DNA of 64,000 nucleotides from Macrostomum lignano. Its lineage: Eukaryota. The translations under genes and the position numbers were made by a program. This document shows, piece after piece, positions 354-41,485 of the stretch. The stretch lies in the NCBI GenBank assembly GCA_002269645.1, contig NIVC01000617.1, positions 1-64,000 on the forward strand, given 5' to 3'. The notes beneath the pieces were generated by a model that was not told the DNA's origin, made no database searches, and worked only from the letters and a program-made list of their open reading frames with translations. Numbering within the stretch: the first letter of the stretch is position 1; every line of letters begins with the position of its first letter.

Positions 354-923
354 CGCTCGATGTAGCTGGCCAGCTCTGAGTGGCCGCTGAGCCTCGCCAG
401 GTCCAACGCCGTCCGACCCTCGCGATCCTGCAGTCCGAGCAGCCGCGACCTCTTCGAGTTTCCGTGATTCAAGCATTCATTGAATTTAAACTGCCTAAGC
501 AGGTGCAGCAGTGGCTTGGCGATTTCCAGCGTCCAGTCCGCGCCGCCTCCATCAGCGGAGTGGCGCCGTTGTCGTTTCGCAGCCACTTCGCATCGAAAGA
601 CAGCAGCGTCAGCAGACGCAGGTGGTCCTGTCGGGCTGCTAGGTTCGCAGCCGTGTCGCCGTTCGCTGTCAGCCGCCTTGGGGTTCGCGGCCAGCTTAAA
701 TAAGTACAAGATGCACTTTTCAGTGTGCACGGGAGTCTCAGGAGCGTCGGCCACCAGCATGAGGACGGTCCGACGATCTGCATCAGCGCTGGTGACCAGC
801 TGGCGCGTTGCCAGCCGCCGCACCTGGCCGAAGTCACCTCGGATGACGTCGTGGGCGAGAGTCTGGGATCGCTGGTGAGTCTCCGACGCTTGCCCGGTTG
901 CTGGGGTCCGGCTGAGTGAGTTC
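354..923 (-). pseudogene. Unit W: ankyrin-repeat exon ANK-B (frameshifted); gene continues off the left edge
   Basis: Homologous to the ANK-B exons at 10037-10608, 17775-18345 and 22630-23201 (HTEKCILYLF, NGDTAA.LAAR.DHLRLLTLLSFDAKWLRNDNGATPLMEAARTG, ELASYIER). Same CAGTTGCAG acceptor, and donor CG|GTAAGT at 353. It is 570 nt versus 572 in intact copies, with about four single-base indels (two near 860-875, +1 near 637, -1 near 524). Could be a pseudogene or sequencing error. Confidence 0.8.
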
Positions 924-1465
924 CTGCAACTGCAATTGAGGCACCCAATCTGCACATTCAAACATGTGAGTGAGTTCCTAACTGCAATTAAGCACTAAAG
1001 CTGCACATTGAAACATGTGAGTGAGAACCAAAGATATTTTTCAAATGGATTTAAAAAAAATAAATTTCAAATCAAACTGCTACAAAACTTACATTCTTAC
1101 AAAGAACCCTATGTACAATATAAGGTAAAACTTACCTTGTAATCAGAATAGTATATCACCTTAGAGGCCGCACTGCCCATTTTTAAAGACTCGAGCAGTT
1201 AATCAACTGGAAAATCAAAATGCATGAGCAGCTGCGTCAACTCAAACTCAACAGATTATATAGCGGCCTCAGAAGACATTGTCAGAGAGATGCACTGCCT
1301 GCGCCTCATTGGCTGAATGCAAACCCAGTGTCTCTGTTTCTGATTCTCTGCCGTACAGAATGCATACTACTCACGGCAGTAGAAGTTAGATTGTAGATAT
1401 TATTTTCACTTTCGCATAATACTTTTTCTGAATTTCTCTGTTGTAATACATGGCATACAATGATA

Positions 1466-2240: not shown

Positions 2241-5200
2241 TTTTTTTTTAAAATAATAAACGATAAACAAGAATACGTGTCTATTGTGTTGAGAATGCAC
2301 CGTGCCTGGAGTCGCGTGACCGTGTAGAGAGGTGGGTGGATGGACAAGAGACGGGGAGGGAGAGAAGAATGGCAAGCCGAAAAGATGAGAGCGAGGGAGA
2401 AGAATTCTGATGTACCAAATCCTATAATAACTATTATACTATCTAATAGTGCAAGTTTGGTGAAAGCAGGTTTCTAGTTGTGAAATGAGAGAGTATTATA
2501 TTAAAGCCAGCCTGCAAAAGCTTATTAGAGAAACTACCTGGCATATTATTCTGCATTAACTTCATGGCCTAACTAAAAATTATTTTTATAAGCTTCGTTT
2601 TTTAATAGCGTTGCTCACAGAAAAATACGTCTTCTAAATCTGGCTTTACTCAAGTTTACACGGCTTTCAGGAATTAACAAAATATAATTTCATTCTACTG
2701 CAATATAAAATGATGGCGAAGTTTGTTTATTATCCACAGGATTTAAAAAACTACGCCATCAAGAGCAAAAAACGACTGTAAACTCAATGATTGTACGCTC
2801 GTATAGAATTGTTTGGAGATGCAATCAACCGTAGAAACATGTTAACACATGGATCTCATGTAAAAAATGCAATACCCAGTTGACATCGTTTTAAAGAGAA
2901 TTAATTTGACTATTTGAGACGATAATTACATGTACGTCGTACGCCACTCCTCTGCAGAGGACTTGAATCTGAGACTGGGATTAAAGGTGACCCTTAATTA
3001 CCTCCCGTCGCCATCTTTGGTTGTTATCATCTCGGAAGCGTCAGCGCTGGAGGTCGCGGTTCATCACCGGATGATTGCGTCACCAACACCGCGTTTCAGC
3101 AGCCACTCTTGCATCATGCGCATCTTTTATTAGTACATATATATAACTGCCTGTCTGCCTGTTTGTCTTGCTTTATTCTTTTTAAAGGGGCGCAACGTTT
3201 TAATTGCGCTACAACTTTTCAGCAGTTTCTAGAAGAGTCTGTAAGGTGCTCTAGAATCTCCTTAGCAATACTTACTAAATGTCATCTTGCATTTTTAGTA
3301 TGCATCTCTATTGCATGTCTCCAAGAGGCGGGCAGGAGGGGGCATGTCCCTCAGTAAATGCTTCGGGGGGACATTTCAATGCTTTGTCCCCCGTACCAGC
3401 TCTGTGACCTGTTATGTAAATCAAGAATTTTGTTTCAGGGCACCACGGCGCTAAAATGAGTGACTGGGGTCAAAGAAGTTGCGAAACTCGATGCTTATCT
3501 CGTTTCAGAAGACATCAAATGCAGTACAGAATTTCAGTTAGCTGTTCAGGCTCACCGCATCAGCACAAAATCTGCCAACCTGGCTTAACAATAGGCTGAG
3601 CTGCTTCTAAATCTAAAACTGTCCTTCATTCAAAACCAAAGAAATTCAGTTTGCCACTATCTATGCGCTAGTAAATATAGAAACTGAAACACGCAAATGC
3701 AGCAATGCTGTTTATTAAGACGAAGGGGCACATGGCACGCCACAGCAGCTCCAGATTAAAGATTAAATGCAGACTGAAAAATAGATGCAGAAAGACGTAC
3801 AAGTATGACCTTACGAACTCAGAAAAGAGTAAAATGCAGGGCTGAAACAGAATGCGGGCTGTGGTTGATGTGTGGGTGAGAAACTTCAAAAGAAAAGAGC
3901 GGAAAAGAGAGGGAGTGTAACTCGTATATCTAGCAATATTTTTGAAACTGAAAAACAGTTTCTGATAAATTTAGAAAACGAAAGCCAGAGCGTCTATAGA
4001 CGGTGAGTGGAATATTAAAATAGACGATTAGGCACGGACAGAGGTTTTCAAAACAAAATTAAGTTGCCAAATACTTAACATACTACTTATATATGTTATT
4101 AGTCGCAGTTCGTTGCCCTGCATCTTGATGCAGTATCCAGACTGAATATCCAGACCACAGATTATCACCCAGAACGGTCATTCACGGTGACAGCAGTGAC
4201 CGCAGTTTGTGAACAGTGATAAAGTCCTGGCTGCATAGTGCAGGCAACTGTCAGCCAATACATTCGCCAAATTCACTTATTGGTCAATTGAAATCTTCAA
4301 AATCAAAGAATATACAGGAAATCTAGCTAGGTGACATTGTTTCCAACTCTTGTGCATAATTGCTTTCGTTAGCGGTTCTAAAAAACAATTCTTCAACAGC
4401 TGTAGAATAATTGAGTCTAAAACTTTCAATAAATAAGCATGAATAAGAGTTCCGTTGAAAAATTTATATGCTAGTCTCACTTATCGTAAATACAAAGTTT
4501 GTCTGATAATGAATAATGAATTATGATAACGAAATACAACGTAAAGACGAGCTACTCACTAAGCAACATGTTACATTTTCCACCCCCGACACGTGCGACC
4601 AACTTTTCTCACATCTCAGCGGTTTTCCTCTCAACTGTGGGTGATGCAGCTTCCGTCACAAGAAGGCCCCAGTTTATTAACCTGATGAGGAGAGACAGGA
4701 GAGCTATGACCACAGAGTTGGATTAAGCTCGACCACTTTCAGTTCTCATGCAGACCTCATGAACGGGTCTCATAAGCAAAAACGTTCTGAAATTAAAAAT
4801 TTCATGTATGAGTAGATCTCATCTGAGAGTTTTTTCTCTATTTGATATCTATCTCAATTGCTTCGATCCTTTGGCCCTCTTAATACATGTATACGTATTA
4901 TACAGGCTGCCAATCGGGACCCAAAAACCATGCTACTTGTAAATTACTGTATCAAGAGCGAGAACGAGAATTTAATCACCTGTAGCACTGCCTGGAGTTG
5001 TTTCTTGGGCTCTCGGTGGTTGGGTGCTCATATATGGAAATTTCCTTTCTCTTGCTCTCTCACTCTGTCAAGCTTTTGTTTTATTGCTCATCCCAGCAGC
5101 CTATAAAACCGCGAAAAGCACCGCCTATCTGTATGCACCTGGCTCAATGCTAGCTTCTACTTATAAGAACATCGAAATTTTTGCCCTATCGTCCATTTAT

Positions 5201-6094
5201 TTCTTGCATTTTCTGCAAGCCGTTTGCATTTTGCAGCAAATTTGCGAGCCGTACTTGTCCAGCTAGTGTTTCGTTTAGCTATGAGCGTGAGCAGTCCTGC
5301 TCACGGCTCTCTTCATCAGTTTCTCGTACATTTGCACGTGTGTTAATTAACAGAATTCATCAATACACCCTCGCTTTGACCACTGACCAGATGTTCCACC
5401 TTTTCTGCGTAATCTTTCGTCTCTTATGTTTATATCTACGCATATTCCTAAACGTTCTAGTTGTCAATTGCCCATAAAGGAGTCACTAAGCAAACAACCA
5501 GTCCGATTTTGTTTGTAATTCAGTTTTTAGAGACGATAAACCTTTAACTAACTACCAATTTATTGTTCAGAAAACTTGTGATTACCAATTAACTTTAAAA
5601 ACGGTAGTCACGGTGTTAGAAACTTTAAATATAGAAACACAAAAAATAATTAAAAAATCAACCGTAACTGAGTAGCTACAAATTTTAAGCAGATTAACTT
5701 GAGTAGACATTGGAGCAGATCAACAAGTAGCTTACGCGAGCTCTTGAGCTGAAGGGGCAACCCAGCAGTCGGGAAAGCAAAAACTTGAATAAATAATAAA
5801 AAACACGTCGGATCAAAAAAACTTATAAATATATAAAAAATTGCGGCTAAATATGGATAGGCACGGCACACAAAACAGAAAGCTGCAAGTACAGGAAAAG
5901 TTCGGTTGCTTGAGTAAACTGGAGGACAGTGTTTCAGCAGCAAGAGAGATTGTTTGTCAAAAGATAAACATATCGATTACTAATTTTCAGCTAATTTGCG
6001 TGGCTACTGGGCTACGTTACTTTCAATTCTATTCTAACTCTTCTCAAAGCTACTACTTAGCACGTTGCTGAGTGAATATAATAGTGTCGACGTC

Positions 6095-9000
6095 TCAGAA
6101 ACCGCTAAAAAATTTCATTGAGCAGCTTAAACTTTCGAGCTTCTCTGGATCGAAGCTTACAAGGCGTGAAAGCTGGTCGACTTTCTGTGGCACAACATGG
6201 TACAGGTTGTTTTTCACCCGAACCGGGTTTTCCTGCAAGTGGCCGCTCACCTTGGTCATGATGGTACTGAGGTCGAGCTCACGGAAGTTTTCTCGATGAA
6301 ATCGCAAACAGTCTGCACGTACAGCGAACCCGTGTCGATGTTTCTAAAGGCGGCTGAGCCTGGAGTGTTGGCGTAGCAGAGCAGAAAGTCGCTCTCTGCA
6401 GGACGGACCGCGGTGTTGTACACCGGAGCGGGTGCTCGTCCGTTTCCTCGCGAGAATTGGGAGCAACAACAGCGCGGTCGAGACGGCTTCCGCGACAGGC
6501 CTGGATGAAGAACGCCTTCGGCCTGCCTTCAAGTCTGCGGCAGACAGAGCTCTGCGATGCGATGACAGTGGCGGTGAGGTTTTTCGTCTTAGAAACATGG
6601 TATACTGTCTAGTCTCCGCTTCTTTGATGAATTAGATTGAAGGCGTGAGACACGCCTGTTTCAGAACTCAATTCAGAACTCAAAATGAGATTTCGGCTCT
6701 CTCATGCGCTTGTATATTTTTCCGCTAGCGTTCGCTGGCTTCAAGCCCATACCTGTAAAGCGCAAATCCCCCAACATGTCTATGAAAATATTTTACGTTA
6801 ATAAAATGCACTACATGTTTTGTCATCAGTGCCACAAAGTCTACACAGACTTTTGTAAATGCGAAAACGAGTTCCTACACTCAATATTACCTTTCGGCTC
6901 AATACTATACATTTCTATTCAGAGCCCTTTTTAATATTCCTGTCCTTGCTCATATCAAGATAAAAAACTATCAACAGGATATTCTCGGCGATAGCTTACC
7001 TGGAACCTGTCTGTCAGCTTTCGAATTTCGTAGGGACAGCCGTCCCTACCGTAGATGCAGTCGTGGCTGCCGTGCGCCATCAGGAAGCAGACAAAGCTGC
7101 CATGCTCGCAAGGTCCGGTGACTTTTTTATCTCATGGAGGAAATCATCCACCTGCTCAGCGGTAAGATCCTATTTTACCTTGACGATGAAGCGCAGACTC
7201 TCGAATACCTGTTTCACTCGTTCAACATCACGAACTGAACCTTTACGCTCGGTATGACTGAATGTGATGTCACTTCCGGAGTCGTACTTGCTGATGTTGA
7301 TGATCAGGCAGTAGCCTTGCGGGTCCGTCACTGGATAGAAGTCTCCCTCCACCCTGGAATACAGTGAATGCTCAATACATTTTTTACGAGCTCGTACTTT
7401 ACAGCGCAAAACATAAAATTTAGTATCACCTTGACAGCTGATGGCGAGCGGTTTGACACGCATGGCTCCTCCGAAGTCTCCAAAAGTTCTTTTAAGTGAA
7501 AAACAACAATTTGACTATGCTGTTACTGAATATTTGTGGCATGCTTTGCCTGATGACTAAATAAAACTTCGACTCACAGATCTGGTTCCTCATCGCTTGG
7601 TATCTCGTCATCAGCATGGTCTGTAAAAACTTTTCGTCTGAAAAGGTAAAAAAGCCATGCAGTTTTCGTAGCTGTGTGCTGTAGCTGTGTGTTGTAGCTG
7701 TGTGCTGTAGCTGTGTGCTGTAGCTGTGTGCTGTAGCTGTGTGCTGTAGCTGTGTGCTGTAGCTGTGTGCTGTAGCTGTGTGCTGTAGCTGTGTGTGCTG
7801 TAGCTGTGTGTGCTGTAGCTGTGTGCTGTAGCTGTGTGCTGTAGCTGTGTGCTGTAGCTGTGTGCTGTAGCTGTGTGTGCTGTAGCTGTGTGCTGTAGCT
7901 GTGTGTGCTGTAGCTGTGTGCTGTAGCTGTGTGTGCTGTAGCTGTGTGCTGTAGCTGTGTGTGCTGTAGCTGTGTGTGCTGTAGATGTGTGCTGTAGCTG
8001 TGTGCTGTAGCTGTGTGCTGTAGCTGTGTGTGCTGTAGCTGTGTGCTGTAGCTGTGTGTGCTGTAGCTGTGTGTGCTGTAGCTGTGTGCTGTAGCTGTGT
8101 GTGCTGTAGCTGTGTGTGGTGTAGCTGTGTGTGCTGTAGATGTGTGCTGTAGCTGTGTGCTGTAGCTGTGTGCTGTAGCTGTGTGTGCTGTAGCTGTGTG
8201 CTGTAGCTGTGTGTGCTGTAGCTGTGTGCTGTAGCTGTGTGCTGTAGCAGTGTGCTGTAGCTGTGTGTGCTGTAGCTGTGTGTGCTGTAGCTGTGTGCTG
8301 TAGCTGTGTGCTGTAGCTGTGTGTGCTGTAGCAGTGTGCTGTAGCTGTGTGCTGTAGCAGTGTGCTGTAGCTGTGTGCTGTAGCTGTGTGTGCTGTAACT
8401 GTGTGTGCTGTAGCTGTGTGCTGTAGCTGTGTGCTGTAGCTGTGTGTGCTGTAGCTGTGTGCTGTAGCAGTGTGCTGTAGCTGTGTGCTGTAGCAGTGTG
8501 CTGTAGCTGTGTGTTGTAGCTGTGTGCTGTAGCAGTGTGCTGTAGCAGTGTGCTGTAGAAGTGTGTGCTTAGTGTGCAGTGTCTGCGCTTGAGCTGAAGA
8601 AACTCACCGTGGCTCCGAAGACTCGTCAAAGTACTTCTTGCCTTCGTACCTGAAATTGATTTGGATAGTTTGAATCAAGACTTTGGCTGATATTTTGTTT
8701 TCACGTGAGTATTTAGGAACTCAACAGCAGATTTCTGATTTCAAGATGGGATTCAGGGTCTCGAAACAAACTCATTTTTTACATAGATTTTATATTAAGC
8801 CGTAAATTTTGAATTTTATCTTTAAATTGAAGATTTTGCTTAGATTTATCAGCAATAAAGTTATAAAGTTATCAACTGGCAATCTGCAGTCAAACTGCAC
8901 TGCAAACTTCCTCAATGCAGCTCAGTCAGTCCCTGCTGCCCATTTGGACTACAATAATTAAAAAATTCCCACTCAGAGCAACTGCCGTCAGCTGCTCAAT

Positions 9001-10608
9001 ATTCAATCATAAATTACAGCAATAGTGTTTATCAATCGGGATAAATCAAAGTCAAAGAGAAATTCTCAGTCGCCATGGAAACTCACCCACGCAGCAGCTC
9101 AGCCAGTTCGCTCTTTCCCTTCTCTGTGGCCAAATCCAGCGCAGTCTCGCCGTTTATGTCCTTCAGGCTCCAATCCGCCCCTGAGTCCAGCAGAACCCGA
9201 CCGACTGCGGCGGCGGTGGCGGGGGGCGCATGGATGGCTGCCTGCATGAGAGGCGTAGATTCCATTCCACTCGTGGCATTTGCGGAGACTCCGACAGCCA
9301 GCAGAGCGGAGGCTGCGGCAGAATTTCCAGCGCTGGCTGCGTGGTGGAGGCAACTTTTATCATAAAAATCTGCCAATGTAGGGTCTCCCATATGCACCAG
9401 CTGCTCCCACAGAATCTCATCACAGCAGGACCTGTTTTGAGCTGCCCACATCAACGCGGTGCAACCATATTGGTCAGGCAGGTCGCAGCTGCTGCGGGTC
9501 GCCGCTCGCCGCAGCGCCGCCATTAAGCCCTTATCGGCCAGCCGCCGCAGTTCCTGTCGATCCGACTTCTCCTGCAAAGGCGAGTGGGAAATTTGAGCAC
9601 AGCTGCTCAGTTGCAGCTGCATCGCCACTGCAGATGCCACTCACCTTGGCTATCAGGCCGGAGATAAAGCTATGTCTATCCACAACCAGCCGCATCTCCC
9701 TGAAACAGCAGAATTGAGCAGCGAATTTGCAATTTTCTCAAATCTGGCAACTCACATAGCTATATTATAATAAAATTTTATGATAATTTTCATGATATTT
9801 GTCAACAGAAATTCTAAATAATGTGAGCTGCTCGCGAATGGACTTTCCAAGAGCCCTCAAGCACAGCCTCCCAGTTCTCCATCTGCAGCTCAACCCACAC
9901 ACTCTCACTGCACACCGAGGCCCTACAGCTTCCATTCTTGACTGAGATCAACCCGCATCCCGTTGGCTGGAAGGCAGCTCTCGCCCATCAAGCAGTCAGC
10001 CAGAGACAAGCTCAGCTCAGCGAACTGCTCACTCACCGCTCGATGTAGCTGGTCAGCTCTAAGTGGCCGTTGCGCCTCGCCAGGTCCGACGCCGAGTGTA
10101 AATTGCGATCGCACAGTTTGAGTAGCTCCGACCTCTTCGAGTCTTCGTAGATAGTGGACTCATTGAACCTTCTCTGCCTGAGCAGGTGCAGCAGGTGCTT
10201 GGCGCATTTCCAGCTTCCAGTTCGCGCCGCCTCCATCAGCGGAGTGGCGCCGTTGTCGTTCCGCAGCCACTTCGCATCGAACGATAGCAGCGTCAGCAGC
10301 CGCAGGTGGTCCCGCCGGGCTGCCAGGTGCGCAGCCGTGTCGCCGTTCGCGTCAGCCGCCTTGAGGTTAACGCCCTTCTCAAATAAGTACAAGATGCACT
10401 TTTCAGTGTGCACGGGAGTCTCAGGAGCGTCGGCCACCAGCATGAGGACGGTCCGACGATCTGCATCAGCGCTGGTGACCAGCTGGCGCGTTGCCAGCCG
10501 CCGCACCTTGCCGAAGTCACCTCGGCTGACGAGCTGGGCGAGAGTGTGGAGATCGGCTGGTGAGTCTCCGACGCTTGTACGGTTGCTGGGGTCCGGCTGA
10601 GTGAGTTC
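6095..10608 (-). pseudogene. Unit Z: ANK-B + ANK-A + caspase (peptidase C14A); caspase part disrupted
   Basis: GT-AG exons with compatible phases: 10037-10608 (ANK-B), 9645-9699, 9087-9571 (ANK-A), 8608-8649, 7578-7637, 7000-~7488 (p20: GYCLIIN, FLMAHG) and 6095-6551 (KPKAFFIQACRG, p10 SDFLLCYANTPG). There is an in-frame TAG at ~7150 and -1 indels near 7088, 6435 and 6290 relative to unit X. Confidence 0.85.
7666..8560. repeat. 13/15-bp GCTGTAGCTGTGT(GT) tandem repeat in the intron between micro-exon and linker exon of unit Z
   Basis: Directly visible tandem array. The homologous intron in unit X carries a shorter array (21015-21253). Confidence 0.95.
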
Positions 10609-11385
10609 CTGCAACTGCAATGGAGGCACCTGGCTTTTAGAACCAGAAAAAGGGTATAGAACTCCGGGGTATTGTCGTTTTTTATCCTGTTGAATGAGGT
10701 TAAGGATTACACGTCGAAATGGTCGAGGTAGATTCCATGGAAGAGAAATACGTGTCCATTATGAGCGCTACTGTCGCGACTTATAATAAGGATACGGTCT
10801 AAAGCTACAGACCTACAGTTTATAGTTCTTGTTTTACTGCAAATGTACCAACAGCTAATAGTAATTTATTAGCTCACCGTGTTATTCAGAGAGGAGGCCG
10901 CACTGCCCATTATTCGCACTTCAACCAGTTTTTCTCCACTCAGGCCGGAAAGCAAAATGCATGAGCAGTCGACCCTAGGCAACAGATTATATATCGCCCT
11001 CAGAAGACATTGTCAAAGAGATGCCTGATTGGCCTAATGCAAAGCCGGTGCCTCGGTTTAGGGTTTATCTGTCATACAGAATGCATACTACTTACGGCAG
11101 TAGACACCCTCTAGGCAAATGAAGATCATCGTTGCAAAATTATTTTTTATTTCGTACAAATCAACAAATTTTCTGGCTTCTTCCACTAAAATTGCATGAT
11201 TTTTTTTGGTAAATGCAAGACTTACCTTCTAAAAATAAGCACAATGTTTGTAATTAGTGACAGACACACAGAGACTAAGAGCTGAAATAATGGAAATGAG
11301 GAGAGATATGCCTCTAAGGTTTTGTCGTTACGAGTATATACATGCCATTGCTTGAAATGGCGCAAAATGAGTTATTGCATTGCCA

Positions 11386-12140
11386 AAATGAGTGACTGCT
11401 GTGCCAAAATGAGTGACTGCTGTGCCAAAATGAGTAACAGCTGTGCCAAAATGAGTAACAGCTGTGCCAAAATGAGTGACTGCTGTGCCAAAATGAGTGA
11501 CTGCTGTGCCAAAATGAGTAACAGCTGTGCCAAAATGAGTAACAGCTGTGCCAAAATGAGTGACTGCTGTGCCAAAATGAGTGACTGCTGTGCCAAAATG
11601 AGTGACTGCTGTGCTAAAATGAGTGACTGCTGTGCTAAAATGAGTGACTGCTGTGCCAAAATGAGTGACTGCTGTGCCAAAATGAGTGACTGCTGTGCTA
11701 AAATGAGTGACTGCTGTGCTAAAATGAGTGACTGCTGTGCCAAAATGAGTGACTGCTGTGCCAAAATGAGTGACTGCTGTGCCAAAATGAGTGACTGCTG
11801 TGCCAAAATGAGTAACAGCTGTGCCAAAATGAGTAACAGCTGTGCCAAAATGAGTGACTGCTGTGCCAAAATGAGTGACTGCTGTGCCAAAATGAGTGAC
11901 TGCTGTGCTAAAATGAGTGACTGCTGTGCTAAAATGAGTGACTGCTGTGCCAAAATGAGTGACTGCTGTGCCAAAATGAGTGCCTGCTGTGCCAAAATGA
12001 GTGACTGCTGTGCCAAAATGAGTGACTGCTGTGCCAAAATGAGTGCCTGCTGTGCCAAAATGAGTGACTGCTGTGCCAAAATGAGTGACTGCTGTGCCAA
12101 AATGAGTGCCTGCTGTGCTAAAATGAGTGACTGCTGTGCT
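11386..12140. repeat. 21-bp minisatellite (CCAAAATGAGTGACTGCTGTG), about 36 copies
   Basis: Directly visible. Variants AACA and GCCT are interspersed. Confidence 0.97.
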
Positions 12141-12509
12141 GTGCAACAACCCCAGGATTTCCAAAAATATGGGTAACTTTTTGGTTTGGAACTGGTGGCT
12201 TTGCACCCCTTACGCCATAAAGTCCAAGGCAACTCCCCTTCTGCAGCTATATTGTTGGTATAGAAATTTTTTTCAAAAATGCAGGACCCATTAGAAGTAA
12301 TTTTTCTGACTCTGTTTCAGCCGTGTTACCCATAGGCTGTTTTTATTAAAAATCATCAATAACAGTATTCGCATGCATTGCTTCATTACAAAAGACATTT
12401 TGAAAGAGGAGAGGATGCGGAATATGATTTTCATATTCTAGTCTAATCTTTCTTCTGCTTAAGAATTTCTTGGCTATCATAGTACTCGAAATAATCAATA
12501 ATGATTTAT

Positions 12510-12801
12510 TAAACATGCCCTAATGGCCAGATGTGCAACCGACAGCTCAGCCGCAGCTATTGCGCGGCGCATCTGAAGGTTGCGTACGGCTGTTCAATCC
12601 AAGGACTGGGGGGGGGGGGTCGCCACACATACCCTCAATTACCCCAGCTAATGCTCGCACCCATTTTACAGCTGGGTGAACTGAAGCAATGCAGAGTTAG
12701 GTGTCTTGCTCAATGACACAAATTGTTCCGAGTGGGATCAGGAATCGAACCCCCGACCTTCAGCCGTGAGTCCGACGCTGTAACCACTAGGCTACAACCC
12801 C
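12510..12801 (-). mobile_element. tRNA-derived SINE with V/Meta-like core
   Basis: Minus strand begins GGGGTTGTAGCCTAGTGGTTA (A box) and has GGTTCGATTCC (B box). These are followed by GTGTCATTGAGCAAGACACCTAAC...CACCCAGCTGTAAAATGG, resembling the conserved core of V/Meta-type SINEs. A second copy lies at 13870-14010. Confidence 0.7.
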
Positions 12802-13869
12802 ACTCTTCAAATACACCAAACCGTTTAACTTCCACCTTTGCATAGCTCTGTGCCTGCTTGGAAATATTTCAAACAGGAAAAGGGGTCAGTTTATCCCCTA
12901 GACAAAGAATTCTGGAGCAATGCTGAGCTCTGCTCTTTCAAACAAGATCGGTGCTTTTTCGTTTTGGAAGACATCAAATGCAGTACAGAATTTCAGCTAT
13001 TCAGGCTGACCGCATCTGCACAAACTCTGCCACTTTGCTTAACAAAAATGCTGCATGAGCTGCTCTAAAACTGAGCCGTCTTTCAGAACAGAAAAAATAT
13101 TTTTGCCACTAAATATAGAAACTGAAACACGCAGTGCAGAATGCTGCTTATAGAGGGGCATGGCAGCTGCGCACACTGCAGCAGCTCCAGATTCGAGTTT
13201 AAAGACAGACAATTGCATGCAGAAGAGAGTTAAATGAAGGGGCTGAAACACACGGGGGAGGTGCAGTGGAGGTGTAGAAGATAAAATTCGAATAGGAAAG
13301 AGTGGAGAAGAGGAGGAAGACTGAATGGCCTTGTTTTTGAAATGGAAAAATAATTCACTGATAAATTTAGAAACCGAAACACAGAGCGTCTGTAGGGGTG
13401 AGTTGAGGGTGAAAATAGACGATTGGTACAGACGGCTGTAATAAATATATAAAATTGTCAAATCTTTACTTCACCTTCACCTTTAATTTACTTCAAATCC
13501 AGATAGAATGTCCAGATAAAATAGCCAGATAGAAGACTCTAAAATGAGGGCGCCAAAATGAGTGACTGAGGCGCAAAAACTAAATATTGACAAGCTCAAT
13601 TTACAAAAATATGGGTAATTTTTTGCTTCGAACTGTTGGATTTGCATCGCCTCCGCCAAAAAATTCATGGCAACTTCCCTGCCGATGTTTTACGAGCGTA
13701 CTGTTGGTATGAAGATTCTTATCAAAGATGACTTATTAAAGTCATCACTTCTTCATTGCAGAAGACATTTTGAAAGAGGAGAGGATTCGGATTATGATTT
13801 TCATACTCTAGTCTAATATTCCTTCTGCTCAAGAAATTTTAGGCTGTCATAGTAAATCAATAATAGTTG

Positions 13870-14010
13870 ATTACATTTTACAGCTGGGTGAACTGAAGCA
13901 ATGCAGAGTTGAGTATCTTGCTCAAGGAAACAAATTGTTCCAGTGAGATTGGGACTCAAACCCTCGACCTTAAAGTCGTGAGTGTGACGCTCTAACAACT
14001 AGGCTAAAAC
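13870..14010 (-). mobile_element. Second, more diverged copy of the tRNA-derived SINE
   Basis: Aligns by eye with 12660-12795 (TTTACAGCTGGGTGAACTGAAGCAATGCAGAGTT...CTAGGCTA) inside a duplicated intergenic block. Confidence 0.65.
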
Positions 14011-16814
14011 CTCATTAAATACACCAAACCGTTTAACTTTCACCTTTGCATAGCTCCGTGCCAGTTTGGAAACATTTCAAACAGGAAAAGGGGTCAGTTT
14101 ATCCCCTAGAGAAAGAATTCTGGAGCAATGCTGAGCTCTGTTCTTTCAATCAAATGCAGTACAGAATTTCAGCTATTCAGGCTGACCGCATCTGCACAAA
14201 CTCTGCCACTTTGCTTAACAAAATATGCTGCATGAGCTGCTTTAAAACTTCAGAACAGAAAATATATATTTGTCTGAATGGCCTTGTTTTCGAAATTGAA
14301 AAATAATTCTGTGATAAATCTAGAAACCGAAACACAGAGCGTCTGTAGGGGTGAGTTGCAGGTTGAGGTTTGAGGTTGCGGTGGAGGTGGGGGGAGAGAA
14401 AACTCCAGATAGAATGAGTCGAAAAGACGAGGGAGGCTGAATGGCCTTGTTTTCGAAACTGAAAAATAATTCACTGATAAATTTAGAAACCGAAACACAG
14501 AGCGTCTGTAGGGGTGAGTTGGGGGTGAAAATGGACGATTGGGCATAAACAGAAGGCATTAAAATTATTTAAATTCCCAAGTATTTACCACACTACTTAT
14601 AGTATTAGTCGCAGTTCATTATTGATCAAATTTTGTAATTTTGTTTAACCTCTGACTTGAAAAACATTACCCTGCATCTTGATAGATTATACCGATACGA
14701 GCTAGAATATCCAGATAGATTATCTAATAGAAAACACAATCGGCTAAGGACTTCGTCACTCTGTCCAAATTCGGTTGTAGCCATAGACATGGATAGTGCT
14801 CGGCCTTCTTAAGCCCTCGATCGGTGGTAGTCCGTCAGGCCTAGGAGCAAAGAAATCAATCACTTATTGAATACTCTGGCCTCTCAATTCTATCAGATGG
14901 TCTGCCCTCGGGCAGCTGAGATGTGGGCAAGCAGAACAGCACAGACCCTGTGGCTAAGAGAAGACAGCAAGAGACAACCAGCAGGGAGACTTTTAAAGGT
15001 AGAGATTAGCTAATCCGGAGATTTGGCTAACCCATGCCGCCACCAAACTGGCTCTAGAACTAATTTGCAAACTACAGCTGTTATAAGTGACACTGCTGGA
15101 CTGGATCGCTGTCCAATCTAAAGATTTAAGGGTCGCTAGCAAGTCTCTCTACACCGCTCAGTGTACTATTACATTATTGACTTCCCGTGAAAGTACATCT
15201 ACATGCATTTTGACGCTTCTCCACGACTCTAAGAACGCATAGCGCTGAATGGGGTTTTGCAATAGACAATTTTGACTGAAGAAAATCCGACTCGTGCGTT
15301 CTTAGATGACCTATCCCTCGACACATCCATCAGATGCCATCACCCACATAGTCTGCCCGAGATAGACCTCTTACACCAGTGGAGCTTCCTACTTCTGACT
15401 ACGCTGGAGCACTCAGAGAGAGCAGCGCATCCAGTTAATGCAGACAAAATTCGTACTCATTTCTAACTGAGTAGTTTCATTCTCCTCTCCGTATCCAACG
15501 CACTCATGGTTCGAGCCCTTTTGGAAATATCTCAAACAGGAGAATTCTATAGGCTTGCCAACATGAGAATTTGTGTCCTAAAACTATTTTACATGGCCCA
15601 GAGCAATGCCCATCTATTTTGGAAAGCGCTGTAGATTAAAACACAATGGATGAGCCAGTGCTTTTTCAAGGCCGAAAGAGCCTGTATATGCAATGCACAG
15701 TCTTCTCTGCAAAGCTCTGCCCTCACTTTTGTTCAACAATGGCATTAGAAATAGGCGAACTGAGCAAATGCTGGGGCAGCTGCATGGCTGAGTAATGAAT
15801 TCAGGGTGCTCAAAACTCCACTCAGTTGTACGGGTGGCCAATTCGTATGGGCCCGGCTCAAGTGCGGGGCTTCTTGTGGTCATTGCCAATCTGTCTTTAG
15901 TCTCAGCAGGGTCTGTTGCAAAGCGTTTTTCTACCTGCATGTGGAATCTGTGCCACCCACCTGCTTAATACTCGCGACTGATGCAGGTGTAACTAAATAA
16001 AAAACTTGACAAATATGCATTTAGCATACTTTAAGTATCGATTCTCAATCCTTCAACTTTCTACGAGAAAACTGACATTTAATTAAAACCGTTTGTGTTT
16101 TGGTGCTGAGCTTATAGTAGGGATAAAGGGCGGGGCAGGCTTTTAAAAAAACAGATTATGAGAACAGGGGCCCGTGCTATACAGCACTCTTAACTGCTTA
16201 ACAAGCTTGCATGAAGTCGAAAAATCGTGGAAGAGACTGAAGTACAAGGACGGACCGTCTGCAGAGTACGTAGCTCCGGTATGTGCTGCGACCCCACTGC
16301 GTTCCCAAGGCTTCAAAAATAAAGATATGACAACGCGGGCACCGCAATCTCGGGCATTGAGTCTCTGAGGTGCGCAAAAAATATAAGCTAAATCTCTTCA
16401 TCAGCTTGAGCAGTCTCACAAAAGTGTACAGAGAAGATTGAGTGCTGGCTTGCATATATTATATATATAAAATACAAAAATCTGTTCCGAAATTTCAAGG
16501 ATATGAAACAAAATAACTCAAAGCATAGAGAAAACACACAGAATTTCAGAAAAAGAGAAAAGGACAGTATAGTATAAGGAACCACCTCACAACGACATTT
16601 TAAATCACAGGAGCAGTGTGTGAATCAGCAGCGTGTGAACAGCAGTGAGCCAACAGCAGTGTATGAACAGTAGTGAGTGAACAGCAGTGTGTGAACAACA
16701 GTCACATATGCGCAAGTATCTACCTATATCAAACAAGCTGTCAATATCAAAGATGATACTGTGCCATCATCATTGTGCCATTATGTCCCATCGCTGCCAC
16801 CTGAAGAAACTCAC

Positions 16815-18345
16815 AGCGGCCACAGAGACTCGTCGAAGAACTTCTTGTCTTTGTATCTGAAAAAAGAAGTCCAAGGTCTAAATTCAGGTGATTTTTCGGT
16901 ATAAATAGGCCATTGTGGCTTGGTTACTTAAAACCATTGCTTGCTACTTCATTCGCCTGTTTCATTCCTGTGAAAAGCCCCAGGAAGCCTGTCAACTATC
17001 TGAGAGTGGCTGCAGTCAAATTGCCATTGAGGCATTCTCAGTCGCCATGGAAACTCACCCACGCAGCAGCTCAGCCAGTTCGCTGTTTTCCTCCTCCGTG
17101 ACCAAATCCAGCGCAGTCCTGCCGTGTCCGTCCTTCAGGCTCCAATCCGCCCCAGAGTCCAGCAGAACCCGACCGACTGCGGCAACGGTGACGGGAGGCG
17201 TAGCGAAGGCTGCCGCCATGAGGGGCGTCAACTCACAGTAATCCCTGGCATTGGCGGAGGCTCCGGCAGCCAGCAGAGCGGAGGCTGCGGCAGAATCGCC
17301 AGTCCTGGCTGCATAATGCAGGCAGCTGTCAGCCAGTACATTCGCACAGGTGGGGTCACCCAGCTGCACAAGCTGTTCCCGAGCCTCATTACGACACGAG
17401 CTTTTCCCAGCTGCCCACATCATCGCGGTGGCACAAAATGCGTTAAGCAGGTCACAGTTTCCGTTTGCCACAGCTCGCCGCAGCCCCGCCGAGTCGCTTG
17501 AATCGGCCAGCCGCTGCAGTTTCTGTTGCTTCCTATTCTCCTGCAAAGGTGAGAGGGAAATTTGAGCACTGCTGCTCAGCTGCAGCCGCATCGGCGCTAT
17601 AAATGCCGCTCACCTGGGCGGTTAAGCCGGATAAAGATGCATGTTTTTTCACCACCAGCCGCATCTCCCTGAAGCAGAAAAATTGGGCTTCTTGAATCTG
17701 ACAACTACGTCGTACAATTACCAAATTATAATGCTGCAAAACTTGATGGACACAGCAGCAAACTGCTCACTCACCGCTCGATGTAGCTGGCTAACTCTAA
17801 GTGGCCGCTGAGCCTCGCCAGGTCCGACGCCTTCCGACCCTCGCGATTTTTCAGTCCGAGCAGCCGCGACCTCTTCGAGTTTCCGTGCTGTCTGCACTTA
17901 TTGAACATTGCTTGCCTGAGCAGGTGCAGCAGGTGCTTGGCGCATTTCCAGCTTCCAGTCCACGCCGCCTCCATCAGCGGAGTGGCGCCGTTGTCGTTCC
18001 GCAGCCCCTTCGCATCGAACGACAGCAGCGTCAGCAGCCGCAGGTGGTCCCGACGGGCAGCCAAGTGCGCAGCCGTGTCGCCGTTCGCGTCAGCCGCCTT
18101 GGGGTTCGCGCCCAGCTCAAATAAGTACAAGATGCACTTTCAGTGTGCACGGGAGTCTCAGGAGCGTCGGCCACCAGCATGAGGACGGTCCGACGAGCTG
18201 CATCAGCTCTGGTGACCACCTGGCGCGTTGCCAGCCGCCGGACCTTGCCGAAGTCACCTCGGCTGACGAGCTGGGCGAGAGTGTGGAGATCGGCTGGTGA
18301 GTCTCCGACGCTTGTCCGGTGTCTGGGGTCTGGCTGAGTGAGTTC
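16815..18345 (-). CDS. Unit Y: ankyrin-only paralog (ANK-B + spacer + ANK-A + micro-exon), no caspase exons found
   Basis: Exons 17775-18345 (ANK-B, one T missing in a T-run at ~18138), 17614-17668, 17059-17540 (ANK-A) and 16815-16856, all with GT-AG sites in the same phases as unit Z. No linker, p20 or QACRG exon is recognisable between 16814 and 10609. Confidence 0.75.
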
Positions 18346-19594
18346 CTGCAACTGCAATTGGAGTACCCAAGCTGCACATTCAAAGACGTGAGTGAGAACT
18401 CAGTTTAGTAATGGACCGCTTGAACCCACACAAAATCAATATTTTACACTAAATACGTCCATGACGCTTGATAGGTTTGCATTTTAGTTTGTATTCAGTA
18501 AGTGCATTGTTCAGTGATTCCATTGTCCTGCATTTGAATCATGGAAGTCTGTGTTGTCAGGCAGTCAGACACAGCTCGTGTTTCGTTACTTTCGGCTCAC
18601 ACGGCTCTCTTCGCCAGTTACATGTGCTCACTCATTAATCAACACAATTCATTAAAACACCCTCTTTAACCCATTGACCAGATGATCCACCTTTATGTGT
18701 AATTTTTTACTTCGTGTCTTGTTTATATCTCAGGCATATTCCTGAACGTCCGATCGCGTACCTGTGGCTGTAGTTGCCAAGAAGAGTCACCAAGCAACAA
18801 CCATTTAGTTTTTAATTGGGATACAACGTCTTTTAGCAGCGATAAAGCCTAACAAATTTTTTACTAGTTTTGCTTTAGAAAGCTTTCGATCACCGATTGA
18901 ACTTTATAAACAAGCAATAAGATGGTTAGAAACGTAATTAAAACAATAAAGATTACCAAAACAAACGTTAACGGTAATTGAGTAATTCAGTTCACATCAA
19001 CTTGAGTAGCTAGATATCAGTGCCAATTAACAGTAGCCTACAGTACGCTTGAGCTGAAAGGGCAACACAGCTGTCGGAGAAGCAAAAACTGGGTATAAAA
19101 AAACTTGAATAAAAATCTCAGAAAAGCACATGCATGTTTGATTAGTTGAAAATCTTATAAAAATAAGAAATTACCGGCTGAATTAATTGAAACCATCAGA
19201 GCGGTCTAATCTAAATAAGGCTACGAAACACAAAAACAAATGGCTGCAAGTACAGAAAAAGTTTGGATAAACTGGAACAGTATTTCAGCAACAAAATGAT
19301 TGTTTGTCAAAGGCTAAACATCTCGATTAAAAATTATTAGTTATAATTTGCCTGCCTACTCGGCAGCAGAGCAAAACAGGCTCCGTCACCAATTGTATAT
19401 GTCCCTATTTCTCCTCTGAACTGTGGGAGATGCAGTTTGCGTCACATTGCTCCAACTTTGGCTCGTGAAGAGAGAATGTCAGTTATGGCTGAAGTTGGAT
19501 TAAAGCTGCTAGTCTCAGTTCTCAGGAAACTTTAACATGTTGCTGAATGTACTTCTATACAAGTGTCGCAGAAACCTCTAAGTAATTGTTCCAT

Positions 19595-22500
19595 CTAAAC
19601 TTTTTCAGCTCTTTCTGGATCAAAGCTAACTTTGCGCGAAAGCTGGTCGACTTTCTGCGGAACAACATGGTGCAGTTTGTTTTTCACCCGCACAGGGTTC
19701 CTCTGCAGGTGACCGCTCACCTCAGTCATGATTTCACTAAGGTCAAGCTCACGGAAGTTCTTCTCGATGAAATCGCAAACAGTCTGCACGTACACCGAAC
19801 CTTTTTCGATGTTTCTAAAGGCGGCTGAGCCTGGAGTGTTGGCGTAGCAGACCAAAAAGTCGCTCTCTGCAGGAAGGACTTCGTCGTTTAACACCGGAGC
19901 GGGTGCCTCGTCAGTTTCCTCGCCAGAATTGGGAGCATCAGTTCGGTCGCGACGGCTTCCGCGACAGGCCTGGACGAAGAACACCTTCGGCTTTCCTTGA
20001 AGGCTGCGGCAGACAGAGGTCTGTGATGCGATGGTAGTGGCGGTGAGGTCTTCAGCCTTTGAACCTAATTATACTGACCAGTGGCGACCACAGAATGATC
20101 CTAACTGGATTCAGGATTTTAGCTCGTATAAGATGTTTTTAGGATCTGTGGTCTGGACTGTTGTAAATGCCAAAAACATGTTCATTTCAGTCAAGATTAC
20201 CTTTTGTTTCTATTCATAAATTTCTCTTTAGGACCATTTTAATAGCCCTACGAGCTATTCTTGCATAAATCAAGATAACAAAATAATAAACATGGTATTT
20301 CTTGCGAGGCTTACCAGGAACCTGTCTGTCAGCTTTCGAATTTCGCAGGGCACGCCGTCCCTGCCGTAGATGCAGTCGTGGGTGCCGTGCGCCATCAAGA
20401 AGCAGACAAAGCTTCCGTGCTTGGCAAAGTCCGGTGACTTCTTTATCTCACAGAGGAAATTATCCACCTGCTCAGCAGTGAGGTCTTCTCGTATCTTGAC
20501 GATGAAGCGCAGACTCTCGAATACCTTTTGTACTCGTTCAACATCAAGAACCGAACCTTGACGCTCTGTGTGCTCAAATGTGATGTGACTTCCGGTGTCA
20601 TACTTGCTGATGTTAATGATCAGGCAGTAGCCTTGTGGGTCCGTCACTGGATAGAAATTTCCCTTGAGCCTGGAATGCAGCAGATGCTCAATAGCTCGTA
20701 TACATGTACTTTTTATTGTAGCAAGGCCAAACAACACAATGTAGTGGCACCTTGAGGGTTGATGTCGGACTGGTCTGTCACGCACAGGTTTTGTAGGATT
20801 TCTAAAAGATTTTTATACTGACATAGGAATAAATTCAATATTAGGATGATATAATCAATAAATATTTGTAAGCAGTTCCCCACGACCACGAGAAAAATAT
20901 CTTTAACTTTGACTCACCGATCTGGTTCATCATCGCTTGGTTCATTGTCAAGGGCATGGTCCGTGAAAACGTTTCGTCTGAAATGGTCAAAAAGGGTAAG
21001 AAGTTCTCTCAGCCTTGTGCTGTAGCTGTGAGCTGTAGCTGTGTGTGCTGTAGCTGTGTGTACTGTAGCTGTGAGTTCTAGCTGTGTGTACTGTAGTTGT
21101 GAGCTGTAGCTGTGTGTACTGTAGTTGTGTATGGTGTAGCTGTGTGTGCTGTAGATGTCTGCTGTAGCTGTGTGTGATGTAGCTGTGTGTGCTGTAGCTG
21201 TGTGTGCTGTAGCTGTGTGTGATGTAGCTGTGTGTGCTGTAGCTGTGTGTGCTGAAGGAACTCACGCCAGTGCCAGAGGCTTGTCGAAGTAAATCTTGCC
21301 GTCGTACCTAAATAGGCAGTTCGGAGTCTGAAGTCAAGGTAATTTATGTGAGCCCATGCTCTTTGCTTCGTTCTATCTGTTAATCGATTTTTATTATTTT
21401 AGTATCGTGCGATAACCGTAAATGAGTAAGTTGTAAACTTGTAAACTATTTATTTAACATTACAAAAGACCACAAAAAGCTACCCTTGATACGATCGTAA
21501 GTCTATACACTGGCCAAATATTTTTTTATAATTAGCCTAATTTTTCTTATGTTTCAGGCGGTCATGCATAGCTTTCGTCGATGGAAAATTCGAATGGGAA
21601 GTGAGTCGAATATCGAAAAAAAATATGCTTTCTTAATGCTGTCAAAAGACACTCGGTAGTCATTTTCATTGCGAACGATTCTGACTTGAATTGGAAAATG
21701 AGTTAAATGAAATTTATGATGTCAGTAGGAACGGACCTTAATGCCCAGGGTTTTGGTGTAGAGTTTTGAGTTATTTGACCGTTTAACTTTGCACACCGCT
21801 CCCCCCACTTCATTCCTGAACTCAAGTCTGAACTCACAAAGATTGATAGACTTTACCTGCACTCTCAAAAGTGACGAACATAGACGAATCTTCTGTGATG
21901 GCGACTATTCGATTTTGCAGAGCATATGTTACTTACTTGTCTTTAAGTTCTTTTGATTACCGAATTATTTACAGGGTAGGGCAAAGAGCGTTTAATGATG
22001 CCTTACTTAATAGCTTACTGGTGATTCAACTGGCAATCTGCAGTCAAAATGCACTGCAAACTCCCTCAATGCAGCTCAGTCTAATTAAAATTAATTAAAT
22101 TAAAATTTATTGTTTACCATAGAAGTTTTATGGTAAATTTTAGAAAATATAAACTGGCAATTAGGCGGTTAAGGCCCCTTCGGGGGGACCTGTACCTCCT
22201 TGTATGCCCCAGAGTATTTGTGAGACATTTGTGAAAAAGCATTCCCCAGATAGCAAGTTTATCCCAAAAACAAGCATCCGGATCCCCGATATAAATCCAA
22301 CAAAGTTTTGAAGCTAAAAATGGAATAAGGAATTTAAATAAACTACATGTAGCTTCTGAGCTTTAAGTCTTGACATCTCAGCAATTCCCCCATGAGCCTT
22401 GGCATCACAGCAATTCCCCGTGAGCCCTGACATCTCAGCAATTCCATTATGAGCCTTGACATCTCAGCAATTCCATTATGAGCCTTGACATCTCATCAAT

Positions 22501-23415
22501 TCCCCCGAAGGTTCGCTTTTAAATGCGTCACACAGACACTCACTGTTGGTATATATTGGATTCCAAATTATCTGAGCTGCTCGCAGATGGACTTTCCAAA
22601 AGAACTGCAGCAGCGAACTGCTCACTCACCGCTCGATGTAGCTGGCCAGCTCTGAGTGGCCGCTGAGCCTCGCCAGGTCCGACGCCGTCCGACCCTCGCG
22701 ATTTTTCAGTCCGAGCAGCCGCGACCTCTTCGAGTTTCCGTGCTGTCTGCACTCATTGAACATTGCCTGCCTGAGCAGGTGCAGCAGGTGCTTGGCGCAT
22801 TTCCAGCTTCCAGTCCGCGCCGCCTCCATCAGCGGAGTGGCGCCGTTGTCGTTCCGCAGCCACTTCGCATCGAACGACAGCAGCGTCAGCAGCCGCAGGT
22901 GGTCCCGCCGGGCTGCCAGGTGCGCAGCCGTGTCGCCGTTCGCGTCAGCCGCCTTGGAGTTCGCGCCCAGCTCAAATAAGTACAAGATGCACTTTTCAGT
23001 GTGCACTGGAGTCTTAGGAGCGTCGGCCACCAGCATGAGGATGGTTCGACGAGCTGCATCAGCGCTGGTGACCAGCTGGCGCGTTGCCAGCCGCCGCACC
23101 TGTCCGAAGTCACCTCGGATGGCGTCGTGGGCGAGAGTCTGGAGATCGGCTGGTGAGTCTCCGACGCTTGTCCGGTGTCTGGGGTCCGGCTGAGTGAGTC
23201 CCTGCAACTGCAATTGAGACACCTGGGAGTTACATCTAAGTACTGAAATTTTTTGAGTCAACTTGCACAAGCAACCGGAGTCGCCGACTGTAGATAATTA
23301 CTACTACATGTATTCAGTTTCTGTCGCTTCAACTTACCGCAGAGTTAGGGAAGTCGGTAATAATTATTTCTTCATCTTCTGACGATGAATTCGAATCGTC
23401 TGAGGAGCTTGACAT
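19595..23415 (-). CDS. Unit X: intact ankyrin-repeat caspase (ANK-B prodomain + caspase p20/p10), ~554 aa
   Basis: Exons 23338-23415 (MSSSSDD...), 22630-23201, 21266-21307, 20918-20977, 20315-20801 and 19595-20020 join in frame (1665 nt) with canonical GT-AG sites. Caspase motifs: YPVTDPQGYCLIIN, ERQGSVLD, FLMAHG, CRSLQGKPKVFFVQACRG, LPAESDFLVCYANTPG, FRNIEKGSVYVQ. Confidence 0.92.
21015..21253. repeat. GCTGTAGCTGTGTGT-type tandem repeat in unit X intron
   Basis: Directly visible. Homologous position to 7666-8560. Confidence 0.9.
22368..22505. repeat. ~29-bp tandem repeat (TGACATCTCAGCAATTCCATTATGAGCCT), about 5 copies
   Basis: Directly visible, in the unit X intron at the inferred ANK-A deletion junction. 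Confidence 0.85.
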
Positions 23416-40960: not shown

Positions 40961-41485
40961 TCAAGCCAGCTTGTACATACTGCCCTGCATTGTTAGCCGG
41001 CCATCTCGAACTTTCTCGTCCAGAAAGTTTTTCAATTTCTGCTGATCCAATTCCACGTTGGATCAACTAGGAACAGCTGCAGCATAGTGCGGATCCGCTC
41101 CACTGACATGCACGAGTCCATGTTGGTCAGCATGCCCACCACGTAGTTCCACAGGCACTCCCACGTCTCCTCAGACCCGTCGCCTGCGCCGGCGTCTCCG
41201 TCCGCTTCGACTTCTTCCTCGGCTGCCGTCTCCGACATTGACGAATCCGCGGTGGGGGCGGCTTCGGCGGCCGAGTGAGTTGAGTCAACTAAGCGAAACC
41301 GCTCCGGCCGGGGCTCGGAAAGAATCCCCTGGAGGGATTTTTTATGGTTCAAGAGTGTTATAGGCTGTCGTTTGTTCTACTGATAGGAGAATTCAGCCCG
41401 TGTGTCATTGTGTCTGTCTGTCTGTCTGTCTGGTCTGGTCTGTCTGTCTGTCTGTCTGGTCTGGTCTGTCTGTCTGTCTGGTCTG

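Follow-up and report, generated by a model that had tools for sequence, protein, structure and literature searches.

The peptide-binding region of the major histocompatibility complex (MHC) and the leucine-rich repeats (LRRs) of plant NLRs belong to birth-and-death multigene families with gene conversion. Their variation is focused on ligand-contact codons, and synonymous divergence is raised there too. The designed ankyrin repeat protein (DARPin) libraries of Binz et al., 2003, are said to be randomized at repeat positions 2, 3, 5, 13, 14, and 33. Caspase prodomains such as CARD and DED are normally conserved adaptors. Fungal NLR-like proteins have highly conserved ANK, TPR, or WD40 repeats with hypervariable sites, and het-d and het-e of Podospora are examples (PMC4986451; Dyrka et al. 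2014). ANK caspases, which have an ankyrin prodomain, were first noted in Schistosoma; a 2024 study (Genome Biol Evol, PMC11463336) described them as a clade found in parasitic flatworms alone and missing from the free-living Schmidtea and Dugesia. In that study, Macrostomum lignano was listed only with a kinase-prodomain caspase, and the flatworm phylum was reported to be without the FADD/DED-caspase extrinsic pathway. Here, we analyzed positions 1 to 64,000 of contig NIVC01000617.1 of M. lignano, a stretch of 64,000 nucleotides (nt) that we call the window. Two segments in it, from the copies that we name Z and Y, appear to be the ANK-A exons of tandem paralogs in a multigene family of caspases with a two-module ankyrin prodomain (ANK-B and ANK-A). 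Judged from sequence, ANK-A variation maps across the family to the canonical ankyrin target-binding face and lies over a conserved scaffold. Selection favoring diversity on that surface is probably the best explanation.

For both ankyrin exons, and likewise for the neighboring caspase exons, the top protein matches all come from M. lignano, a free-living flatworm. The ankyrin and caspase features of the family are on the minus strand throughout the window, which holds four ANK-B exons (W, Z, Y, and X), two ANK-A exons (Z and Y), and two sets of caspase p20/p10 exons (after X and after Z). These features are as follows.

9087 to 9571, minus strand: ANK-A exon of copy Z, 485 nt, starting in phase 0 and ending in phase 2; a half repeat plus four ankyrin repeats, supported by the open reading frame, the splice sites, and Pfam Ank_2 (1.6e-22).
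9572 to 9644, minus strand: 73-nt intron between micro-exon and ANK-A of Z, 85 to 92% identical among copies of different loci, which is above the flanking exons (75 to 79%); the Y counterpart is at 17541 to 17613.
9645 to 9699, minus strand: micro-exon of Z (EMRLVVDRHSFISGLIAK), 55 nt; a β-hairpin with a tip that is hypervariable among paralogs.
10037 to 10614, minus strand: 578-nt ANK-B exon of Z, intact and strongly unlike the other copies in its C-terminal third.
6128 to 7352, minus strand: caspase exons downstream of Z ANK-A, with an in-frame TAG at 7170 to 7172 and three 1-nt deletions relative to X; looks disrupted.
17059 to 17540, minus strand: ANK-A exon of copy Y, 482 nt, with a one-codon deletion in helix 2 of repeat 1 and loss of the conserved Gly4 of that repeat.
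17614 to 17668, minus strand: micro-exon of Y (EMRLVVKKHASLSGLTAQ), 55 nt.
17775 to 18351, minus strand: ANK-B exon of Y, with a 1-nt deletion (frameshift) in an A-run; a mosaic, Z-like in its N-terminal part and X-like in its C-terminal part.
22630 to 23207, minus strand: ANK-B exon of gene X, intact, with exon 1 at 23338 to 23415; linker and caspase exons follow, without micro-exon or ANK-A.
19598 to 20668, minus strand: caspase exons of gene X (p20 at 20318 to 20668, p10 at 19598 to 20020), with MAHG and QACRG intact.
354 to 929, minus strand: ANK-B exon of copy W, with three small indels; pseudogene-like.
22743 to 22766 (X) and 10150 to 10173 (Z): 2-codon islands within ANK-B.
4223 to 4267, minus strand: orphan cassette fragment (ANVLADSCLHYAART), 45 nt, identical at 42 of 45 nt to the hypervariable cassette of Y ANK-A repeat 2 (repeat positions 33 to 14).

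A sequence-only reading of this DNA had placed the two ANK-A segments at these coordinates, and the splice sites on the minus strand show that it was right. The open reading frames 9083-9640 and 17055-17591 are exon-containing frames, not whole genes. Each ANK-A exon follows a TTTGCAG acceptor, and its last bases, CGTGG, are followed by GTGAGT, so the apparent stop of the frame is a splice donor. The ANK-B exon ends in GAGCG, again followed by GTGAGT, and the micro-exon has the pattern EMRLVV-x5-ISGLTAQ. The predicted family layout is an ANK-B exon, a 55-nt micro-exon, an ANK-A exon, a linker, and caspase p20/p10 in one polypeptide. In the window, the order of the exons and their reading phases agree with an ankyrin prodomain and a caspase in a single chain, and independent UniProt gene models support the splicing. 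P0031 joins ANK-B, micro-exon, and ANK-A; P0013, P0043, and P0044 join ANK-A to a caspase, and P0013 connects the end of Z ANK-A with the caspase exons downstream of it. P0029 corresponds to gene X and has exon 1, ANK-B, linker, and caspase with no ANK-A, and P0049 (NCBI PAA46841.1) is a full-length relative of 760 amino acids that has all of the parts. The micro-exon and ANK-A together form a frame-neutral cassette of 540 nt, which some paralogs have and gene X (19598-23415) does not. Therefore, ANK-A is an optional module. In gene X, the caspase is a PF00656 match with both catalytic motifs, MAHG and QACRG; its best PDB match is caspase-3 (7e-37). No NACHT or NB-ARC domain was found, and Pfam gives only Ank and Peptidase_C14 for the window exons and the full-length relatives. 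Residues 23 to 31 of P0049, immediately after the first 22 residues of the partial model, read MGSGSSVNS. This could be an N-myristoylation signal that would anchor some ANK caspases in the membrane.

We compared the ANK-A exons of Z and Y and found that 98 of 161 residues (61%) are identical, close to what the sequence-only reading had estimated. The variable blocks that it listed (DQYGC/NAFCA, QN/GK, DFYDK/NVLAD, SA/RT, SGMES/DYCEL, IH/FA, and INGE/GHGR) were also recovered, and they sit at repeat positions 1 to 5 and 13 to 14. Before the variation was inspected, we fixed an a priori set of 26 "binding" codons, comprising positions 2, 3, 5, 13, 14, and 33 of each repeat. The repeat register was set from conserved motifs and confirmed independently by HMMER alignment to DARPins. 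Z and Y differ at 22 of the 26 a priori positions and at 41 of the 135 others (Fisher p=3e-7), which upholds the earlier claim that differences cluster at ankyrin binding positions. The framework DNA around 9160-9210 and 17131-17180, ahead of the INGE/GHGR hairpin, is identical at 53 of 54 nt and so as nearly identical as had been noted.

Across 18 non-redundant paralogs, the pattern is the same. The a priori columns have a mean entropy of 1.88 bits, versus 0.55 bits elsewhere (Mann-Whitney p=7e-12), and they supply 17 of the 26 most variable columns (p=1e-10). With more paralogs included, the clustering is likewise non-random. Position 10 of repeats 2 and 3, on the same helix face, is among the further hot columns. 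The ANK-A hot set comprises the hairpin tips (33 and 1 to 5) and helix-1 positions 10, 13, and 14 in every repeat, and these are nearly randomized. Aromatic residues make up 10.6% of hot positions versus 3.3% elsewhere.

Both modules are ankyrin repeats by Pfam Ank_2, where the cut-off is 27.3 bits: Z ANK-A scores 80.3, Y ANK-A 48.7, and ANK-B 61 to 66 bits. An AlphaFold2 model of P0031 (pLDDT 91.3, pTM 0.88) has paired helices throughout, and its two ankyrin modules are connected by a long helix and the micro-exon hairpin. The best PDB matches of this model in Foldseek are DARPin-DARPin rigid fusions, tankyrase ARCs, and ankyrin-1/2. The hot sites were placed by secondary structure and DARPin register.

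ANK-B has constant and variable parts. In its core, X and Z differ at 6 of 111 residues, exactly the number reported before; after the LLRQ motif, they differ at 20 of 46. The canonical binding positions of ANK-B repeats 1 to 3 are invariant in 16 paralogs, and in the window copies only 1 to 3 of about 38 non-synonymous sites differ there. Because these repeats belong to the same genes, variability at canonical positions is not automatic in the family. The view of ANK-B as a constant domain in the sequence-only reading stands for repeats 1 to 3 and fails for the C-terminal insert and the repeat-4 hairpin (LK-xxx-G), which are hypervariable. In the islands LLRQ-[AM/RR/FK/PR]-FNEC-[RQ/TI/LN/MK]-HGN, nearly every nucleotide differs, and the surrounding DNA is about 95 to 100% identical. 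In the C-terminal 46 codons of X and Z, the proportion of non-synonymous differences (pN) is 0.286 versus a synonymous proportion (pS) of 0.084. The ratio of non-synonymous to synonymous divergence (dN/dS, or ω) for the whole ANK-B exon is 0.56 to 1.79. Site model M2a puts 4% of ANK-B sites at ω 23 (likelihood-ratio test [LRT] statistic, 36.7), including both 2-codon islands after LLRQ and a site just ahead of the repeat-4 hairpin. With up to nine different residues per column in 20 sequences, the 5-residue tip of the micro-exon hairpin is one of the family's most variable stretches. At the level of sequence, the variable region extends from the last third of ANK-B through the end of ANK-A, and the truly constant part is ANK-B repeats 1 to 3.

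We then carried out codon analyses on four DNA sequences. Protein searches found the full ANK-A exon on two contigs, L001 (NCBI contig NIVC01000028.1, two identical copies) and L002 (ENA), and a partial exon on a third, L003. A scan of metagenome contigs with a conserved 25-mer yielded no additional ANK-A DNA, paralogs listed in UniRef alone come as protein without DNA, and the analyses used Z, Y, L001, and L002. Over the whole ANK-A exon, dN/dS is 0.53 to 1.03 (Nei-Gojobori). At the 26 a priori codons, dN is 0.67 to 1.06 versus a framework dS of 0.23 to 0.41. A maximum-likelihood partition model with shared dS and branch lengths gave ω_bind of 3.8 to 3.9 and ω_rest of 0.6, and twice the log-likelihood difference from ω_bind=1 was 42 to 44 with all three topologies. 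In the comparison of M1a with M2a, the LRT statistic for ANK-A was 50.7 (p=1e-11), and about 10% of sites fell into an effectively saturated class. Nine of the ten M2a sites with a naive empirical Bayes (NEB) probability above 0.95 are a priori positions.

The best fit came from a heterogeneous model with two ω classes and shared dS (log-likelihood, -1593.0). Its advantage over the rate-multiplier model is small (difference in the Akaike information criterion, about 3.6); the rate-multiplier models reached -1598.1 with ω=1 and a 4.5-fold rate and -1595.8 with a free rate and ω below 1. A single ω for the 26 codons with shared dS fit worse than either a rate multiplier or two ω classes and was superseded. 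The hot codons are 0.47 to 0.57 diverged per site at all three codon positions, and the framework is 0.14 to 0.23 diverged, with third positions at 0.23. As homology ends about 25 to 75 nt from each exon, the intron and flank sequence usable as a neutral yardstick shrinks to the 73-nt intron plus 25 nt of 3' flank. Hot-codon divergence exceeds every adjacent yardstick, namely the intron (8 to 19%), the 3' flank, and the framework third positions. Because these are all far below the hot codons, plain neutrality at equal age is excluded. The diversifying selection proposed by the sequence-only reading is supported by ω and by M2a under a shared dS, and not by the saturated hot codons taken alone, where pN is close to pS. 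Whether dN/dS exceeds 1 at the hairpin and helix-1 sites is ambiguous in the same way.

Only gene X has an intact appearance in the window. Z and Y were ruled out as intact genes, because the Z caspase is disrupted and Y has a frameshifted ANK-B and neither a caspase nor an exon 1. Among the window copies, exon 1 was found upstream of X only. One of the 1-nt deletions in the Z caspase, together with a skip over the stop region, is also present in P0013. The other two sit in GG runs and are missing from P0013; they may be assembly errors or homeolog differences. On L001, positions 5548-6700 and 9860-11012 are identical copies of a partial ANK-B, micro-exon, and ANK-A, 4312 bp apart, and they reflect either an assembly artifact or a tandem duplication of very recent date. 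The 5' end of the L001 ANK-B is truncated by a long (CTGT)n microsatellite, and there is no caspase within 10 kb of the L001 ANK-A copies. Since many copies (Z, Y, W, and L001) are defective, the family evolves by birth and death. Every ANK-A exon that we saw stays an open reading frame despite frameshifts in neighboring exons.

Exchange between the copies is evident as well. The N-terminal part of Y ANK-B (DLHTLAQLVSRGDFGK) is like Z, and the C-terminal part (RQAMFN.CRQHGN..KNREGR) is like X. This mosaic is direct evidence for gene conversion or recombination between paralogs. Synonymous divergence from L001 is 0.06 to 0.18 in the ANK-B core versus 0.30 to 0.45 in the C-terminal part. Hairpin cassettes recur among paralogs in different combinations. 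In the orphan fragment at 4223-4267, all three differences from the Y cassette are synonymous, and its flanks are unrelated. The fragment may be a relic of patch-wise templated transfer. No further orphan cassette fragment was found in the 64-kb window and another 21 kb that were searched.

We suggest that selection for differing binding specificities among paralogs has acted in a birth-and-death family with many dead copies. Scaffold residues and much of the scaffold DNA are kept alike among paralogs, partly through gene conversion between copies. We regard such diversity-favoring selection on the ankyrin surface as a probable rather than a firm explanation, and several observations weigh against it. 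Inside the 26 hot codons, pN and pS are nearly the same and both are saturated, so a Hughes-Nei style test within the hot codons is uninformative. An excess of dN over dS is shown solely relative to framework and intron divergence, and the free rate-multiplier model favors a very high rate with ω below 1. There are only four full DNA sequences, with a star-like tree. Adjacent ANK-B segments are two- to fourfold apart in synonymous divergence, and recombination among paralogs, which inflates site-model tests, is evident. Both window ANK-A exons, and three of the four sequences in the codon analysis (Z, Y, and L001), come from defective copies; given this and ω_rest of 0.6, part of the divergence is relaxed drift. 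Moreover, old cassettes kept inside a gene-converted scaffold fit the data as recurrent positive selection does, and the two cannot be separated. Both would need selection against homogenization, unless conversion is patchy.

If constraint were merely relaxed, with no selection for diversity, the hot codons would be tolerant surface positions in an old, pseudogene-rich family whose scaffold is held alike by purifying selection and conversion. The near equality of pN and pS, third positions as diverged as first and second ones, the common defective copies, the ω_rest of 0.6, and the conversion mosaics are all as this account would have them, and ω=1 with a 4.5-fold rate outfits the single ω_bind of 3.8. 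However, divergence in the hot codons is 2.5 times that of framework third positions and 3 to 5 times that of the adjacent intron, and neutral sites cannot exceed local neutral divergence. Conversion tracts would also erase islands of one to five codons within the scaffold if selection did not weed out these events. The same positions are invariant in ANK-B repeats 1 to 3, the ANK-A exons stay open, the heterogeneous-ω model fits best, aromatic residues are enriched at hot positions, and the differences in the orphan fragment are all synonymous. On this evidence, we consider relaxed constraint fairly unlikely. A mutational mechanism, in which short-tract gene conversion copies patches of about 15 codons from paralogs or fragments and shuffles hairpin and helix-1 cassettes, would account for hot codons that differ at all three positions and have sharp borders to near-identical flanks. 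The sharing of cassettes in varied combinations, the Y ANK-B mosaic, and an orphan fragment that covers exactly one cassette point the same way. Yet this is the only such fragment in the DNA searched, shuffling redistributes diversity and cannot create it, and no known eukaryotic system does so for ankyrin repeats. As an account in its own right, this mechanism is improbable; it is compatible with diversity-favoring selection and may be part of that process instead of competing with it. In principle, apparent hypervariable blocks could stem from misalignment or from errors in assembling a repetitive polyploid genome, and the window does have an assembly gap, many 1-nt indels, some in homopolymer runs, and the two Z caspase indels missing from P0013. 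We give this very little credence, for the same pattern is present in independent sources (the NCBI assembly with L001, the ENA contig L002, and more than 15 UniProt models), the alignments are gap-free except for one codon, and the blocks are in frame.

The M. lignano family resembles the fungal NLR-like proteins. In both, repeat scaffold DNA is kept alike via concerted evolution and a few binding-surface positions are hypervariable, and both are large families with many paralogs and coupling to cell death, which here would be through the fused caspase. However, the near-identical units of the fungal proteins are repeats inside one gene, joined to a NACHT or NB-ARC signaling domain. In M. lignano, the units are exons of paralogous animal genes, there is no NTPase domain, and the effector would be a fused caspase. 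The UniProt proteins P0063 and P0045 of M. lignano represent another ANK-caspase subfamily, with about six tandem ankyrin double-repeats inside one protein, about 90% identical and differing at few positions. Fungal NLR repeats have this architecture of "high internal conservation". DARPins, which gave the best matches in sequence as well as in fold, likewise combine a conserved consensus scaffold and variation at positions 2, 3, 5, 13, 14, and 33, and the DARPin-DARPin fusions matched by the P0031 model are likewise two ankyrin modules with a shared helix. Unlike the man-made proteins, the M. lignano family also varies positions 1, 4, and 10, the non-repeat insert of ANK-B, and the hairpin micro-exon. 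The likeness to the MHC peptide-binding region and plant NLR LRRs lies in birth and death, gene conversion, and variation at contact-type codons with raised synonymous divergence there. Fold, effector, and organism are different, and through saturation the classical within-site excess of dN over dS is not seen here.

The parasite ANK caspases resemble the present family in being flatworm caspases with an N-terminal ankyrin prodomain, and that prodomain has likewise been proposed to be a protein-recognition module (PMC11463336). Contrary to that study, predicted ANK caspases also occur outside the parasitic flatworms. At 90% identity, the ANK-B paralogs of M. lignano fall into more than 30 clusters, and its ANK-plus-caspase proteins form at least six clusters at 50% identity, including an ANK-kinase-caspase and an internal-repeat subfamily. 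Its ANK-prodomain caspases include P0029, P0044, P0049, P0050, P0063, P0075, P0111, and P0145. A Roc/Ras-caspase (P0053) and the ANK-kinase-caspase (P0111) are also present. In an exhaustive caspase-domain search, all six ANK-plus-caspase proteins among the best 149 representatives were from M. lignano, and the next relatives were caspase-3- and caspase-8-like proteins of other phyla. Because no parasite ANK caspase is among these 149, common descent with the parasite proteins is not shown. A word-indexed search for parasite relatives gave M. lignano matches and one fish caspase-14 only. The presence of ANK caspases in a free-living flatworm alters the published evolutionary scenario (PMC11463336). 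Our literature search found no description of hypervariability in ANK-caspase prodomains.

We suggest that the variable surface may be a specificity module, choosing a partner which recruits or activates the attached caspase, and that the invariant ANK-B repeats 1 to 3 may bind something common to all members. A large caspase family with a kept scaffold and a scrambled binding face would make caspase recruitment a diversified system of recognition. It is plausible that the family is a repertoire of intracellular sensors with an output in cell death, and we infer that the ANK-A surface might have an immune-receptor role. Such a system could be a new kind of innate sensor in a phylum reported to be without the FADD/DED-caspase pathway. 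In the boldest form of this idea, the family would be a germline repertoire of receptor-protease fusions. Its hypervariable ankyrin surfaces would recognize non-self (pathogens, viruses, transposons, or other individuals) and trigger the fused caspase directly. Gene conversion of cassette size, drawing on paralogs, pseudogenes, and pieces like the 45-nt orphan fragment, would renew its diversity. We hold that form to be unlikely as a whole. If true, it would make the family an animal counterpart of the fungal and bacterial repeat-sensor cell-death systems. The idea is directly testable, because M. lignano is a transgenic model that is tractable by RNA interference.

The remainder of the window is of eukaryotic character, with short exons, GT-AG introns, many minisatellites, Ty3/Gypsy and mariner elements, and an assembly gap. 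The minisatellites have 19- to 34-nt units and are very dense in the window, at 7574-8629, 11322-12232, 26500-28700, 29160-29890, 42270-43215, 45900-46520, 46870-49060, 49900-50770, and 51217-51823. One lies within the intron between Z ANK-A and its caspase, and another lies between the Y and Z units. The other features are as follows.

32533 to 38196, plus strand: Ty3/Gypsy-type retroelement with RVT_1 and rve (integrase) domains and frameshifted open reading frames.
61916 to 62632, plus strand: mariner/Mos1-type transposase fragment.
39684 to 40231: assembly gap, a 548-nt run of N.
41032 to 45202, minus strand: ANAPC2, a housekeeping neighbor with TPR_ANAPC2 and ANAPC2 domains, its exons interrupted by coding-frame minisatellites.
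48799 to 49413, minus strand: TMEM208/SND2, also a housekeeping neighbor.

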